A DNA stretch of 64,000 nucleotides from the sequence record NC_041916.1; one strand, written 5' to 3'. Below the pieces are notes generated by a model. It was not told where the DNA came from. It made no database searches and was given only the letters and a program-made list of their open reading frames with translations. Both the position numbers and the translations under genes were made by a program. Below, piece after piece: positions 20,784 through 27,901 of this stretch; position 1 is the stretch's first letter, and every line of letters begins with the position of its first letter.

Positions 20784-21377
20784 CTAACGTTCGTATTTCC
20801 CTTCACGGAAGTGGGTTAAGCACACCGCATGATAGGTTTCATTCCCACCTACCACAACCGCTGATTCACCCGGATTACCGTAATGCGCTTTGCCGTCCAA
20901 CACCATCATGTTGTGGGTCGCGTTCTTACCACACCAGCACATACCTTTCACGATGTTGATTGAACTCGCGTGACGCAACAACCAATCTGAGGCAGGGAAC
21001 CCGCCACCTTGGAAGTTATTACGCAAACCGTAACACAACAAAGGAATCTTACGTTCCGCACAAATAAGGCTCAATGCTTCGATTTGTTCTACACTGATGA
21101 ATTGCACTTCGTCAATGATGATCACGTCTGGTGCTTGTTCAGGGTTACGTAACCATAACTCTAGTTCACCCAACCCTTCTTTAGGGAAAGGAATGCAGTT
21201 ATCCCATTTAGCCCCACTACGACTTGACAACGTACGAGGACAGCCATCGCGGGTATCCACAACCGGTTTAAGAACGTAAGGATACATTCCTCGCTCTTTG
21301 TAGTTAAACGCGGTCTGAATGGCGGTGGTAGTCTTACCACTATTCATCGCACTGGTATAAAAGTAAATCTTAGACAT
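20784..21377 (-). CDS. tdk: thymidine kinase
   Basis: P-loop SAMNSGKTT, IIIDEVQF, YGLRNNF, zinc ligands CWCG and VCLTH. Confidence 0.95.
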   Translation of the reverse strand: MSKIYFYTSAMNSGKTTTAIQTAFNYKERGMYPYVLKPVVDTRDGCPRTLSSRSGAKWDNCIPFPKEGLGELELWLRNPEQAPDVIIIDEVQFISVEQIEALSLICAERKIPLLCYGLRNNFQGGGFPASDWLLRHASSINIVKGMCWCGKNATHNMMVLDGKAHYGNPGESAVVVGGNETYHAVCLTHFREGKYER

Positions 21378-23059: not shown

Positions 23060-23085
23060 ATGTGGACCCCCGTAGGAGTCCACAT
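23060..23085 (-). terminator. intrinsic terminator after the chaperonin gene
   Basis: ATGTGGAC/GTCCACAT stem, T-rich downstream on the minus strand. Confidence 0.7.
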
Positions 23086-23094
23086 TATCTTTGA

Positions 23095-24654
23095 TTAAAT
23101 ACGTACGTCCGCTAAGCGAGAGTTCATGATGATCGAGTCAGTGTCCATCAACGTGATCGCCATTGATACCGCTGCTTCCAATGCAGTACATGTTGCCAGT
23201 GCCGCGTCCCATACGTTAATCGCACCCGGAGTAGGACCGACTTCACCCGTTGCCAAGTTGGTGTATGAAGTGATGTTATCAAAATCCGTCTTCATCAGAT
23301 ACACTACTTGTTGACGCAATACAGAAGCGTAAGTTGCTGCGATGTCACACTCAGGGTATTTGGTTTCTAACACTTGACCTACTTGCGCTAACGAGTAACC
23401 ACAACCCTGTAGGACACCGTTAGACAATGCTGAACGACAAACACGACCTACGTCCTCAAAACGGTCACGACGTTCTTTGATGTCCGATTCTGTCACACCA
23501 CCGACGTAGATAGTAACGCTACCACCTGACAAAATGTTAAGGCGAGCTTTAATGATCTTACCTAATGCCGAATTACGTTGTTCTACATCCAGTTCATCAA
23601 TTTGCTTTTTCACAGCATCGGCTGCTCGTTGCAGGTTAACGGTGTGTTGAACACCACGACCAGTGACTGCGAATTGCGTCACGTTTACATGAACCATTGG
23701 GAACTCTTGTTCGTCCGCATACACATTAGGGTTCGACATCAGTTCTGTCATCATCTCAGTACCTAACACCAAAGCGATGTCATTTACCAAAGAAACACCT
23801 GAAGAACCTGCTGCGTTGATCTTAATCACCTTAAAGGCTTTGCGACCCACCGTGGTGTTCATTTGTTTGATCGCCGCTTCAGTAACTTCATCCGCACCAC
23901 GACAAACGATCAAGTAAGTGCCGCCTGATTTCACGTACTCTTCTGTCAGGTCAACGAACTTCATGATCTCTTCTTTGCTGTCCAAGCCACGAATCTTATC
24001 CGACACTAAGATAGGACGGTAATCACCGCGACCGTGGAATTGTTCCGTTAGACCTGTACCCAATTCGGACATGTCAGGAGAAAGGAAACCACCCGGCCAA
24101 GTACAACCATTGCGGTACTGCACCTGATCTTGGTCGTCACCTGAATCACGGAACTCTAGGTCTGGCAGATGTGGATTGTCACGGTACACTTCCAGAATCT
24201 TGTTCACGATCACTTGGTCGTTGTTACTGGTCGTTAATAGTACGTCCGATAACAACGTAGAGTTGATGTCCACTTCCGTTGACATTGCTTTCAGGACGTC
24301 CAGCACTTCATCGGTGTATTGACGAAGCAGTTTCTTAGTACGGAAACTGATTTGGCTTTTGAAGCGCAGGTAGAACTCGTTCAACAGAAAAGCGGTTGTT
24401 GTCGTACCGTCACCACAAATGCGGTCTGTGCGTAAACAACATTCTGCGATCATTGTCGAGATAAGGTCTTTGGTTGGATCGTCGAAGCGCATGGCTTTAG
24501 CGACAGTCACACCATCTTTAGTAGGATGAGGTTTACCCGACTTATCACAAACCACGATGTTACCATCAGGTCCCATAGTGGATTTTACAGCACCACAAAC
24601 TTCACGAACGGTTTCGTCTTTGATTGCTTGCGTGTCTTTGTAATTTACGTACAT
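23095..24654 (-). CDS. groEL: GroEL-like phage chaperonin
   Basis: MGPDG, TKDGVTVAK, GDGTTTT and ERRDRFED motifs of group I chaperonins; no GGM tail; 519 aa. Confidence 0.92.
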   Translation of the reverse strand: MYVNYKDTQAIKDETVREVCGAVKSTMGPDGNIVVCDKSGKPHPTKDGVTVAKAMRFDDPTKDLISTMIAECCLRTDRICGDGTTTTAFLLNEFYLRFKSQISFRTKKLLRQYTDEVLDVLKAMSTEVDINSTLLSDVLLTTSNNDQVIVNKILEVYRDNPHLPDLEFRDSGDDQDQVQYRNGCTWPGGFLSPDMSELGTGLTEQFHGRGDYRPILVSDKIRGLDSKEEIMKFVDLTEEYVKSGGTYLIVCRGADEVTEAAIKQMNTTVGRKAFKVIKINAAGSSGVSLVNDIALVLGTEMMTELMSNPNVYADEQEFPMVHVNVTQFAVTGRGVQHTVNLQRAADAVKKQIDELDVEQRNSALGKIIKARLNILSGGSVTIYVGGVTESDIKERRDRFEDVGRVCRSALSNGVLQGCGYSLAQVGQVLETKYPECDIAATYASVLRQQVVYLMKTDFDNITSYTNLATGEVGPTPGAINVWDAALATCTALEAAVSMAITLMDTDSIIMNSRLADVRI

Positions 24655-24731: not shown

Positions 24732-25892
24732 TTAGTTACCGAAGTAATCGTTAAGTTTTAAGTCGTCAATCGTTAGACGGTGACTACCTAGTTTGATGTC
24801 TTTATCAATCGACATCGTCGCTGGCGGGATATTGAAATCGAACTCACTAATCAGTTGATCAATAAGGTTGGTTTCTTCTTCGTCTACTACCAGACCATCC
24901 ACCGACAATGTGAAGCTGTGATTTAACGCACCCATGCGGTTAGCAATGAACTGCGCGTAAATCGCGTAAGGCAGCACTTCGTGAGCAAACTCAGTCATCG
25001 GGAATAACGTGGTCATATGAAGTTTAGCCGACAAATAGTATTCCGGACAATCTACAATGTTGAAGATTAAACGAATGGCTTCTTCACGACCAATCGATTC
25101 AAACATGGTGTTGTCAAAGAACCCGTTGATGTTAGGAATGTCAGCGTACTCTTTTCCTTCCACTAACGCTTTAACCACATCCATCGCATTTTCGTCTTCC
25201 GGCTCGAACTCGTTGAAGAAGTACTCCAAACGTTGGTTCATCGGAATCAGAGTTTTGATGAACGTCATCATGACCTGTTTAGGTGTGTACTTTAAACGAC
25301 CTTCTTTTAGGTTATCGACGACGCTGTTATCACTGAGTGGAATTAAGTTAGGATGTTGGAACAACACCATTCCGTTGTCACCCGGGTAAGTAAAGGCACA
25401 ACCATGGTTTGGACCAGTTTGACCACGAGGGATTAAGACCACCTGTTGTTCAGACTCAATTCCGGATTCACGAATGCACGCTTCTAGGGTTAGGTGTTTC
25501 GTCATCATACCGTTGTTGACGTAGGCTTCACGCAGATCGTCCAGTGACTCGATGTTCACACCCGCTTTACGGAAACGTTCCGCGGCTATGTTGATGCGCT
25601 GATCTTCATCAAGGGCTTGTGTGTAACTGATTTCTTCGAATTCAATGAAGCTATCACGGTGATGACAACCCGCAGAATGAAGAACTTCGACGTCTGCCTT
25701 TTCATCCAACAACCAGTTGAGTTCCGCTAATCCGGTCACAACGCCTTCCAATTTCACTTTCTTAGACCATTGCGGTAACACACTTTCCTCACTCAACATG
25801 AATTGATGGGTGAATCCCGGGATGATCTTTTGTTCCGTGATGGGTAGATTTTTGCTGATGACTTCTTTAAGAGCTTGAATGTAATTACTCAT
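24732..25892 (-). CDS. thymidylate synthase-like protein, catalytically degenerate
   Basis: ThyA fold landmarks (SKKVKL..AELNWLL, GQTGPNHG, YYLSAKLH, YAIYAQFIA, LTIDDLKLNDY), but the catalytic PC reads PK and RSxD, DRTG, SRR and H-x-Y are lost. Confidence 0.75.
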   Translation of the reverse strand: MSNYIQALKEVISKNLPITEQKIIPGFTHQFMLSEESVLPQWSKKVKLEGVVTGLAELNWLLDEKADVEVLHSAGCHHRDSFIEFEEISYTQALDEDQRINIAAERFRKAGVNIESLDDLREAYVNNGMMTKHLTLEACIRESGIESEQQVVLIPRGQTGPNHGCAFTYPGDNGMVLFQHPNLIPLSDNSVVDNLKEGRLKYTPKQVMMTFIKTLIPMNQRLEYFFNEFEPEDENAMDVVKALVEGKEYADIPNINGFFDNTMFESIGREEAIRLIFNIVDCPEYYLSAKLHMTTLFPMTEFAHEVLPYAIYAQFIANRMGALNHSFTLSVDGLVVDEEETNLIDQLISEFDFNIPPATMSIDKDIKLGSHRLTIDDLKLNDYFGN

Positions 25893-25900
25893 GGTGTTTC

Positions 25901-26545
25901 CTAATTAAGGTTATCGGACGCCGTTTCTTGGCGTGTAAAGAATTCAGAGAAATCCGACGCTTTCAAACGTTGGTATTCTTCGGGGTTAAATGGATGGTCA
26001 AACGTACCGTCAGCGACGAGTGAATCGGCGATTTCATCTTCGGAGTTTTTCACATCGTAAGTCGTGGAGTTAAACAAGTAATAAGCAAACCCAACCAGTT
26101 TCATGTCGCTGGTAAGTTGTGTGCCTTCCACTAATTGTTCTTGTTGGATTTGGGTTTTCATTAAATCCAGTGTTCCGTCTATTAACTCCATGACACGTTC
26201 CGGTACGGATAAATACGTGGCTTTGTGTATGACGTTACTGAAAGAGAACAACTCTACGGACTCGCCTGTGTCCACCGCAATAAAATGAAGCAGTTGCCAA
26301 TCCGTTGTTTCACCTAATATGGTAATCCCAGTTTTAATGGCCGTAGTCCGGTCTTCCTTTCGGGACAAGAACTTGAGATACGGTGTCCAGTGCTTACCGT
26401 CCATTTGGTGATAATGAGAACCAGAAAAATACAGCTGGTCGTGAATCTTGGATACTACCAAGGCAATGGTTCTTTGTCCGCGCTTTTGTCCTTGTCGAGG
26501 TAAAAGACTTTGAACTTTATTACGTTTACTGGTATTTCTACCCAT
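25901..26545 (-). CDS. hypothetical protein
   Basis: 214 aa, AAGGA SD, basic N-terminus. Confidence 0.85.
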   Translation of the reverse strand: MGRNTSKRNKVQSLLPRQGQKRGQRTIALVVSKIHDQLYFSGSHYHQMDGKHWTPYLKFLSRKEDRTTAIKTGITILGETTDWQLLHFIAVDTGESVELFSFSNVIHKATYLSVPERVMELIDGTLDLMKTQIQQEQLVEGTQLTSDMKLVGFAYYLFNSTTYDVKNSEDEIADSLVADGTFDHPFNPEEYQRLKASDFSEFFTRQETASDNLN

Positions 26546-26573: not shown

Positions 26574-26593
26574 CCCTACCCGTTAAGGTAGGG
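26574..26593 (-). terminator. intrinsic terminator (CTACC family)
   Basis: CCCTACC/GGTAGGG stem, T-run downstream on the minus strand. Confidence 0.7.
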
Positions 26594-26599
26594 GATAGA

Positions 26600-27082
26600 T
26601 TATTTTACCGGAGCTGCGCTCAAGTTATCAAAGTAGAAGGTTTCACCGATGAAAGGTTTCAGTATGTCTTTCATGCGTTCACCTTCTTCTACGTCGATGT
26701 CGTAAGCCACAGACATGTGTGCAACGTAATCGTCCCAACCATGATCATAGCCCGCCGCTAACCAACGCTGGTGTTCTTCTTTAAGTTGATCAGAACGCAT
26801 CACAAACGCTAACGCTGATTGTTTACCGTCTTTGATCGGACCCATCAGTTCAATGGCGACGACTTCACCTTCATAAACCGTGGTCGGGTCGATTTCTTGT
26901 TCTAAGGTAACGTGGCCCAAATCTTTGTCGTAGGCAATCGTGCTATGGAACTTACCATCATCGATAGGAGTAACACCTTGTTCGATTAAGATGTCACGAA
27001 TACGTTCACATTGATGGAACGCCAAATCAACAGAAACGTAACCCTTAGGTTCAGTAACAATAGGATCTAAATTAATTTTCAT
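26600..27082 (-). CDS. acb1: 2H phosphodiesterase, Acb1 (T4 gp57B)-like anti-CBASS candidate
   Basis: Two HxT/S motifs (H46-S-T48, H122-M-S124); KFHSTIAY and ALAFVMRSDQLKEEHQ..AGYDHGWDDYVAHMSVAY parallel T4 57B as recalled. Confidence 0.75.
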   Translation of the reverse strand: MKINLDPIVTEPKGYVSVDLAFHQCERIRDILIEQGVTPIDDGKFHSTIAYDKDLGHVTLEQEIDPTTVYEGEVVAIELMGPIKDGKQSALAFVMRSDQLKEEHQRWLAAGYDHGWDDYVAHMSVAYDIDVEEGERMKDILKPFIGETFYFDNLSAAPVK

Positions 27083-27607: not shown

Positions 27608-27901
27608 TTACTTCCTTGTTAGGCGGTAGAGTTTAAGAAAGTCGGGATGGAACTGACTGCGCCACCCACAGCTTGGACAAACGAACTGTTCACCATCATA
27701 ACTCGTCCTAGGCAATTCATCACACTTCTTATAGTTACCACAATAAGGTGTGTAACGAGGTCGTGTGAGTATGTTGCATCGTACGGTAGTGCCCACTAGG
27801 GGATGACGATAAACGGCATCCTCTTCGTTAGGGCTGATGGTTTCTCCAGCTTTGACTTTCTTTAAGATTTTCTTAACGGTTTGATTGGATATCGGAGCCA
27901 T
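27608..27901 (-). CDS. small zinc-ribbon protein
   Basis: PYCGNYKKC and FVCPSCGW cysteine pairs. Confidence 0.75.
   Translation of the reverse strand: MAPISNQTVKKILKKVKAGETISPNEEDAVYRHPLVGTTVRCNILTRPRYTPYCGNYKKCDELPRTSYDGEQFVCPSCGWRSQFHPDFLKLYRLTRK

Follow-up and report, generated by a model that had tools for sequence, protein, structure and literature searches.

Few enzymes are as conserved or as well studied as thymidylate synthase (TS; ThyA, Pfam family PF00303), whose active sites are shared across the dimer. Phages carry TS paralogues with changed chemistry and an acidic residue at position 177, such as the T4 gp42 deoxycytidine monophosphate (dCMP) hydroxymethylase and the 5-hydroxy-dCMP synthases RB69 gp48 and DLP3 gp80; these still act on nucleoside monophosphates and, to our knowledge, keep the cysteine nucleophile and the arginine cluster. 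A second group is formed by the long-type TS of phiKZ-like phages (phiKZ gp235 and 201phi2-1 gp350; 457-488 residues). A 2025 preprint (10.1101/2025.06.16.659550) shows that phage TS homologues can evolve new chemistry, namely 5-hydroxy-dCMP synthesis, and restates that the choice between uracil and cytosine is set by residue 177. Further afield, the trypanosomatid prozymes of S-adenosylmethionine decarboxylase and deoxyhypusine synthase are dead paralogues conserved beside active ones, and they provide a model for regulatory heterodimers. Here we describe a 386-residue open reading frame (ORF), called ORF386, in the first 64 kb (the window) of Vibrio phage pTD1 (AP017972.1, 239 kb; Gorgonvirinae, Tidunavirus), a nucleus-forming jumbo phage. 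Its product is predicted to keep the TS fold and to have discarded TS chemistry, including the cysteine and arginines that the phage paralogues retain. No described family with this combination was found in the literature, nor was anything relevant on TS pseudoenzymes or on phage TS-like proteins without the catalytic cysteine.

pTD1 has been placed in the nucleus-forming Chimalliviridae (PMC10587174). The ORF386 product, which starts MSNYIQALKEV and ends DDLKLNDYFGN, is identical to BAW98237.1 of pTD1; that protein is annotated 'hypothetical protein', and PHROG 26020, to which it belongs, carries no function label. A first-pass annotation, made from the sequence alone, had described an intact frame of 386 residues, probably under selection, for a TS pseudo-enzyme with a P204-K205 dipeptide, an MTTLF motif (M293-F297) and E305 in place of catalytic residues. 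The frame and all of these motifs lie where that annotation put them. The roles it suggested for the protein, namely a heterodimer-forming regulator, a decoy for a defence sensor, an RNA binder or a structural protein such as a virion component, are candidates.

The sequence signals that connect ORF386 to ThyA are weak yet colinear, with an amino-terminal and a carboxy-terminal block. PF00303 matches ORF386 over residues 24-88 only (19.3 bits, E 7e-4), below the gathering threshold of 24.3 bits, and any PF00303 match is found in just 2 of 11 family members. ThyA is absent from the HMMER matches of the ORF386 family among 1.84 billion proteins, and HMMER provides no link in either direction. 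Profile-profile comparison with hhalign, in which a 14-sequence family alignment was compared with a mixed ThyA alignment, aligns residues 1-84 with E. coli ThyA 1-85 (E 8.5e-4) and residues 306-384 with ThyA 178-253 (E 1.7e-3). These colinear matches point to a homology between ORF386 and ThyA that is far beyond chance.

Structure prediction provides the stronger connection. An AlphaFold2 model built with 11 homologues as input has a mean predicted local distance difference test (pLDDT) value of 86.5 and a predicted template modelling (pTM) score of 0.78, and it contains the features of the TS alpha/beta fold: the large central sheet and helices A, B and J. A Foldseek search with the model matched 384 PDB chains at E<=1e-3 (best 1.5e-8), and all of the matches listed are TS. 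Superposition on ThyA with VIA-align gave a Z score of 21.0 and a root mean square deviation of 2.6-2.8 A over ~225 of the ~255-264 ThyA residues, with ORF386 residues 1-386 spanning ThyA 1 to ~255. In addition, all 100 of the protein-language-model neighbours of ORF386 are PF00303 clusters. On the model, then, ORF386 has a thymidylate-synthase fold, and the fold assignment of the first-pass annotation, for which a superposition of this type had been proposed as a check, holds.

The positions of the catalytic motifs were fixed by using the long-type TS as a bridge. The ORF386 family aligns with these enzymes end to end (1-386 with 1-448, E 3.4e-4). The segment 196-340 alone also finds its colinear place in long TS (E 5.1e-4; aligned part 204-331), whereas the same segment compared with canonical TS gives E 0.59 and falls in the wrong place. 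Against 201phi2-1 gp350, P204, K205 and Q206 correspond to P297, C298 and H299, and the alignment of strand beta-iv has an hhalign confidence of 8-9. Through this bridge, M293-T-T-L-F297 is equivalent to Gln165-Arg166-Ser167-Cys-Asp169, E305 to Asn177 and H163 to Tyr94. The amino-terminal block places I18 at Arg21, E57 at Glu58, W60 at Trp61 and H78-R79-D80 at Ile79-Trp80-Asp81, and the carboxy-terminal block places L334 at His207 and V336 at Tyr209, both in variable columns. The earlier mapping of the nucleophile motif PC to PK, of QRSxD to MTTLF and of Asn177 to Glu305 is therefore reproduced by the alignment with gp350.

These equivalences suggest that most of what TS chemistry requires is missing. 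The Cys146 position is K or N in all 14 sequences, and the nucleophilic cysteine is thus absent; within the same motif P204 is invariant, K205 is replaced by N in 3 of 14 sequences and Q206 is present in 13. Of the phosphate-binding set, the positions of Arg21, Arg166 and Ser167 are occupied by I18, T294 and T295 in variable columns, and no conserved arginine pair replacing the SRR motif (Arg126/Arg127) was found in a region, helix H and strand beta-ii, where the alignment is uncertain. Attempts to map residues 85-203 onto ThyA from sequence (global and alternative hhalign, ungapped profile sliding) yielded no reliable register. The folate contacts are likewise replaced, with R79 at Trp80, F/L82 at Trp83 and the variable F297 at Asp169, and the carboxy-terminal lid and tail are missing, as the model matches ThyA 1-255 only. 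Position 177 holds an invariant Glu305, neither the Asn associated with uracil nor the Asp associated with cytosine. The absence of the nucleophile, the phosphate-binding arginines, Asp169, His207/Tyr209 and the carboxy-terminal tail predicts that ORF386 cannot perform TS chemistry as it is known.

The statement that all recognisable catalytic residues have been lost was nevertheless too strong. Compared with ThyA of E. coli, M. tuberculosis and L. casei, ORF386 shares, besides the fold over ~225 residues and the two colinear blocks, Glu58 of the proton-relay network (E57 in 13 of 14 sequences) and the equivalents of Trp61, Asp81, Pro145 and Tyr181. Moreover, the columns of Trp80, Tyr94, Cys146, His147, Gly173 and Asn177 hold new residues that the family conserves. 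When columns of the 14-sequence alignment are ranked by conservation, those of Arg21, Arg166, Ser167, Asp169, Phe176, His207 and Tyr209 lie between the 12th and 64th percentiles, whereas those of Glu58, Trp61, Ile79, Trp80, Asp81, Tyr94, Pro145, Cys146, His147, Gly173, Asn177 and Tyr181 lie between the 84th and 99th. In terms of the family's own residues, E57, H78, R79, D80, H163, P204, K205, Q206, E301, E305 and Y309 all fall in the latter range, and about ten cleft positions are strongly conserved with new polar residues. Since the abandoned anchors rank low and the base-side columns rank high, the phosphate and folate anchors appear to have been given up while the base side was rebuilt and held constant. 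As cleft positions including Glu58 are among the most conserved of the family, a remodelled working pocket is favoured over a bare scaffold. The label 'pseudo-enzyme' is thus justified as regards TS chemistry, for which the alignments and the conservation pattern agree that the residues are gone; the further notion of an empty fold does not fit the conserved subset of cleft residues.

The same pattern could be produced by a protein that has become a new enzyme, or a sponge for a small molecule. Its rebuilt cleft would then act on a substrate or signal held without help from a 5'-phosphate, such as a nucleoside, a cyclic pyrimidine nucleotide or a base within a polymer, and Glu305 would read the base. 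All phosphate-binding positions have drifted while the cleft columns are conserved with new polar residues, Glu58 is kept, and E305 is invariant at the site that sets uracil versus cytosine specificity (10.1101/2025.06.16.659550). TS homologues do gain unexpected chemistry, the 5-hydroxy-dCMP synthases being an example, and the family has an invariant cysteine, C139. On the other side, the nucleophile position is occupied by K in some homologues and by N in others, and ORF386 evolves ten times faster than ThyA. In addition, every characterised TS-family enzyme known to us keeps the cysteine nucleophile and the arginine cluster, and the neo-functional homologues of the preprint likewise conform to the ThyA / dCMP-hydroxymethylase paradigm. 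We regard a new enzyme or sponge as a minor possibility, somewhat unlikely on balance.

The origin of ORF386 can be approached through the same long-type TS, which also belong to Chimalliviridae and which are its nearest structural relatives among named viral proteins outside its own family. In a structure search of BFVD, the long TS of 201phi2-1 (gp350, E 1.4e-12) and of Aeromonas phage D3 were found at E 1e-12 to 1e-11 and canonical phage TS at 1e-5 to 1e-7, in a ranking that excludes the family's own member and a 393-residue viral protein, UPI001EA56C5A, at rank 2. The long TS of 201phi2-1, of KTN4 (phiKZ species) and of Viktualia keep every catalytic motif; compared with E. coli ThyA they have three insertions, of which one lies in the beta-iii/beta-iv hairpin. 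ORF386 has ~127 extra residues relative to ThyA, also in three insertions. The first of these falls at the first insertion of the long TS, at the small-domain site, where the position is common and the sequence dissimilar; L. casei TS also has an insert at this site. This insertion contains the most conserved motif of the family, N127-G128-M-M-x-K-H-L-T135-L-x-x-C139, in which C139 is the sole invariant cysteine. The insertion in the hairpin (residues 217-283) is the least conserved segment of ORF386; it occupies the same site as in TS of the phiKZ/201phi2-1 type, and the hairpin can be aligned between the two (hhalign E 5e-4). A profile search of PDB sequences matched part of it (residues 227-275) to the ArgR winged-helix DNA-binding domain at chance level (E 0.66). 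The two groups differ in other respects. The long TS keep DRTG, IHEL, VYGK, SRR, PPCH, YQRS-D, PFN and H-x-Y and score 294 bits on PF00303, whereas ORF386 keeps almost none of these motifs; it also lacks their second insertion and, apparently, helix H and strand beta-ii. The descent of ORF386 from an insertion-bearing TS of nucleus-forming phages, of the phiKZ gp235 / 201phi2-1 gp350 type, is strongly supported.

An active-looking TS, which the first-pass annotation had proposed to look for, is encoded elsewhere in the same genome. pTD1 has a single PF00303 gene above threshold (genome positions 200825-201715, minus strand; 176 bits), outside the window, in a DHFR-HD-ThyA operon at 199325-203215. 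Its product carries the PC motif with its cysteine, Q-R-S-C-D, the Asn and H-x-Y, and is 56% identical to ThyA of Vibrio and other marine gammaproteobacteria. The related phages Aphrodite1, PDCC-1 and phiKT1028 each have one Vibrio-type ThyA, and no long-type TS was found in these three. A recent exchange of the catalytic ThyA among these phages was ruled out, since synonymous sites are saturated (proportion of synonymous differences, pS, 0.72) at 91% protein identity; ThyA is therefore old in the subfamily and strongly constrained, unlike the majority of the other genes compared. In phiKT1028 the catalytic thyA gene is in two pieces ~1 kb apart (record positions 146040-148063), which suggests an intron or a homing-endonuclease insertion.

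The simplest history is that of a displaced ancestral TS. An ancestor of the Gorgonvirinae would have had a long chimallivirus TS and would then have acquired a Vibrio-type ThyA that took over synthesis of thymidine monophosphate. The old copy would then have lost the nucleophilic cysteine, the phosphate-binding arginines, the folate contacts and the carboxy-terminal lid, and with them the ability to methylate deoxyuridine monophosphate, and the base/cofactor side of its cleft would have been rebuilt as a conserved polar set: E57, H78-R79-D80, H163, K/N205-Q206, E/D301 and E305. ORF386 would now be a non-catalytic binding protein, whose remodelled cleft and lineage-specific insertions may bind a ligand or another protein. 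It is probably produced together with the product of the 214-residue ORF upstream. The binding role is one that we infer from the rebuilt cleft and the insertions. Positional hints from related phages agree with a displaced TS: a DHFR gene overlaps the TS-like gene in one metagenomic relative, and TS or DHFR genes lie near the chaperonin-thymidine kinase pair in Klebsiella phage Miami and Aeromonas phage D6 (see below). Taken as a whole, the account of ORF386 as a dead descendant of a chimallivirus TS, displaced from catalysis by an acquired ThyA and kept as a non-catalytic binder, is in our judgement probably correct.

Several observations weigh against this account. The alignment of residues 85-203 to ThyA is uncertain, with two possible mappings for helix H and strand beta-ii, and the spatial grouping of the conserved cleft residues derives from their TS equivalences and not from coordinates. 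The conserved charged residues may form a network of buried salt bridges that does no more than stabilise an emptied pocket, K205 is not invariant, and the invariant C139 in the first insertion may leave room for a relocated nucleophile. As to descent, UPI001EA56C5A is structurally nearer to ORF386 than any long TS (E 7e-18, TM-score 0.60), and the common hairpin insertion, which rests on an hhalign E value of ~5e-4, could be convergent.

ORF386 belongs within a very well-known enzyme superfamily, and what is added here is the displaced-TS origin and the conserved remodelled cleft. On this account it represents an enzyme that gave way to an equivalent acquired by horizontal transfer and was kept for other use. 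The setting is that of nucleus-forming jumbo phages, a group with many unknown genes under active study. Binding of a ligand or partner by the remodelled pocket would be a new use of the TS scaffold and could point to a new mechanism of phage-host or nucleotide-metabolism control; if the protein is a mere stabilised scaffold, it would still be a clean textbook example of the birth of a pseudoenzyme.

The ORF386 gene is under purifying selection, as the first-pass annotation had surmised, yet is far less constrained than a working TS. At unsaturated synonymous sites, the ratio of non-synonymous to synonymous substitution rates (dN/dS) is 0.119 (dS 0.37) against a 92%-identical metagenomic relative and 0.067 (dS 0.20) between the homologues of Aphrodite1 and phage 5 TSL-2019; for the neighbouring chaperonin and thymidine kinase genes in the pTD1/metagenomic-relative pair it is 0.04-0.06. 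Across the deep split between pTD1 and Aphrodite1, ORF386 has a dN of 0.73 and its 214-residue neighbour one of 0.54; the values are lower for the chaperonin (0.37), RNase H (0.17) and ThyA (0.074). The protein could in principle be the relic of a displaced TS, functionless and heading for loss, since its enzymology is lost and it is the fastest evolving of the genes compared. We consider this barely credible, as the selection data already speak against it: besides the low dN/dS values, the frame is unbroken in 14 homologues with identities down to 25% and saturated synonymous sites, and 43 positions are at least 85% conserved. The loss of catalytic residues, the purifying selection and the active-looking enzyme in the same genome together describe a pseudoenzyme. 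The family is narrowly distributed. Among 50,697 phage records it is found in only 15, which are without exception from Gorgonvirinae of Vibrio or Photobacterium, and it forms 9 clusters at 50% identity in the 1.84 billion proteins. Vibrio phage BONAISHI has no TS, no TS-like gene and no chaperonin.

The coexistence of an active ThyA in every genome checked bears on the idea that was foremost in the first-pass annotation, namely that ORF386 is a poison or regulatory subunit which uses the beta-sheet interface of TS to pair with ThyA of the phage or the host. As it would supply no Arg126'/Arg127' to the active site of its partner, the heterodimer would be inactive or altered in activity. The shared active sites of the TS dimer would permit this, the fold is kept with its long sheet strands, and dead-paralogue regulators such as the trypanosomatid prozymes are known. 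The prozymes, though, are of other folds and organisms, and heterodimers have been shown there; the active partner of ORF386 would be a xenologue and not a recent duplicate. The idea is weakened because ORF386 has no detectable sequence similarity to Vibrio-type ThyA (hhalign probability 0.6%), because the helix H/beta-ii region with the cross-dimer arginines is apparently deleted or rebuilt, and because the two proteins evolve at opposite rates, ThyA being near-frozen and ORF386 fast, which does not speak for a co-evolving interface. We regard such a subunit as quite unlikely.

The features of the locus are collected in Table 1. An ORF of 212-217 residues lies directly upstream of the TS-like gene in every relative, with an 8-nt gap in pTD1 and a 4-nt overlap in phiKT1019, and the stop codon of the pTD1 copy (ORF214) overlaps the Shine-Dalgarno-like AGGAAA of the TS-like gene. 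The ORF214 model (AlphaFold2, pLDDT 82.6) has a basic amino-terminal helix and no fold match in the PDB, AFDB clusters or the ESM Atlas (best Z 4.6), and ORF214 appears to be an orphan fold. A degenerate DHFR, which would mirror the frd-td pair, was ruled out for ORF214, whose model matches neither DHFR nor any other fold. A complex prediction with two copies of ORF386 and one ORF214 chain, the only partner scored, gave 0.16, which is below the mark and gives no answer either way.

Table 1. Positions and supporting evidence for the features of the ORF386 locus in the pTD1 window
Feature	Position in window	Strand	Evidence
386-residue TS-fold protein without TS catalytic residues, as predicted (ORF386)	24732..25892	(-)	BAW98237.1, phrog_26020; ORF, AlphaFold2, Foldseek, VIA, dN/dS
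Amino-terminal TS core (helix A, strand beta-i, helices B, C), residues 1-84	25641..25892	(-)	hhalign, Pfam match; E57, W60, H78-R79-D80 at percentiles 88-99
First insertion, small-domain site, residues 85-156	25425..25640	(-)	Family alignments; hhalign against long TS
P204-K205-Q206 replacing the Pro-Cys-His nucleophile motif	25275..25283	(-)	hhalign against gp350, column content
Helical insertion in beta-iii/beta-iv hairpin, residues 217-283	25044..25244	(-)	Long-TS alignment, region-limited hhalign, DSSP of model
M-T-T-L-F replacing Q-R-S-C-D, plus invariant E305 for Asn177, residues 293-305	24978..25016	(-)	hhalign, conservation
214-residue ORF (ORF214), candidate partner	25901..26545	(-)	Synteny in all relatives, junction sequence, AlphaFold2
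Terminator-like hairpin and T-run upstream of ORF214	26574..26593	(-)	Pattern scan only
Conserved intergenic element between TS-like gene and chaperonin: TATATTAC, then 9-bp stem-loop	24688..24718	(-)	Sequence, five-locus alignment, motif count
Phage GroEL-like chaperonin	23095..24654	(-)	Pfam Cpn60_TCP1, synteny
Thymidine kinase, few genes downstream	20784..21377	(-)	Annotation, synteny

Directly downstream of the TS-like gene is the chaperonin, wherever the flank is long enough to include it; in the metagenomic relative L014 it is one gene further. The strict order of ORF214, TS-like gene and chaperonin in all relatives, together with the coupling-type junctions, could indicate that ORF386 is a pure structural or scaffold protein (in a complex with ORF214, as a client or adaptor of the chaperonin, or as a virion component) in which the charged residues only stabilise the fold, and fast evolution under purifying selection is typical of structural and interface proteins. 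The most conserved residues, however, are at former active-site positions and are not spread over the surface, and a purely structural role seems decidedly improbable. Searches for virion proteomics and for RNA-seq runs containing the gene turned up none. The intergenic stretch that separates the TS-like gene from the chaperonin is itself conserved, with a mean identity of 83% among five Tidunavirus-like loci, above that of the coding sequence. Its TATATTAC motif, which we take to resemble the early-promoter motif of phiKZ, is seen 5 times in the window against 1.7 expected, and the stem-loop that follows it has a compensatory G-C to A-T change in phiKT1028. The terminator-like hairpin upstream of ORF214 and a second one at 23060-23085, from the same pattern scan, bracket ORF214, the TS-like gene and the chaperonin.

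The wider neighbourhood has connections to nucleotide metabolism. In L014, a gene for a 245-residue DHFR (2048-2785) lies ahead of the chaperonin and overlaps the TS-like gene at the latter's 3' end; this recalls the overlapping DHFR-TS pairs of other phages, but the gene order is reversed. In pTD1 the DHFR gene instead adjoins the true ThyA at ~200 kb. In phages Miami and D6, TS or DHFR genes lie a few genes upstream of the homologous chaperonin-thymidine kinase pair, which suggests that the chaperonin/nucleotide-metabolism neighbourhood is old among jumbo phages. A 381-residue ORF upstream of the D6 DHFR was considered as a TS-like gene and ruled out, as it encodes a GNAT acetyltransferase and has no hhalign match.

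Two genes upstream of the TS-like gene is an ORF (26600-27082, minus strand) for a 160-residue 2H-phosphoesterase that matches the Pfam family Acb1 (anti-CBASS) above threshold (E 8.6e-13) and is kept in relatives (also as PF23474 in L016). This proximity is a further point in favour of a cleft with a small-molecule function. In its most specific form, E57, H78-R79-D80, H163, K/N205-Q206 and E305, possibly with C139, would be the working site of a new TS-fold enzyme, or of a sponge, for a pyrimidine-derived molecule without a free 5'-phosphate, for example a cyclic pyrimidine that serves as an immune signal, and its gene would share an anti-defence neighbourhood with that of the Acb1-like phosphodiesterase. 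PADLOC and NCBIfam scans found nothing. ORF386 matches no defence or anti-defence model, which counts against a role of this kind; the specific form is, in our estimate, unlikely. Further upstream, between RNase HI and a 177-residue ORF, a 97-residue ORF (27608-27901, minus strand) with paired cysteines has a zinc-ribbon-like appearance; it is not annotated in the pTD1 record and is called in L016.

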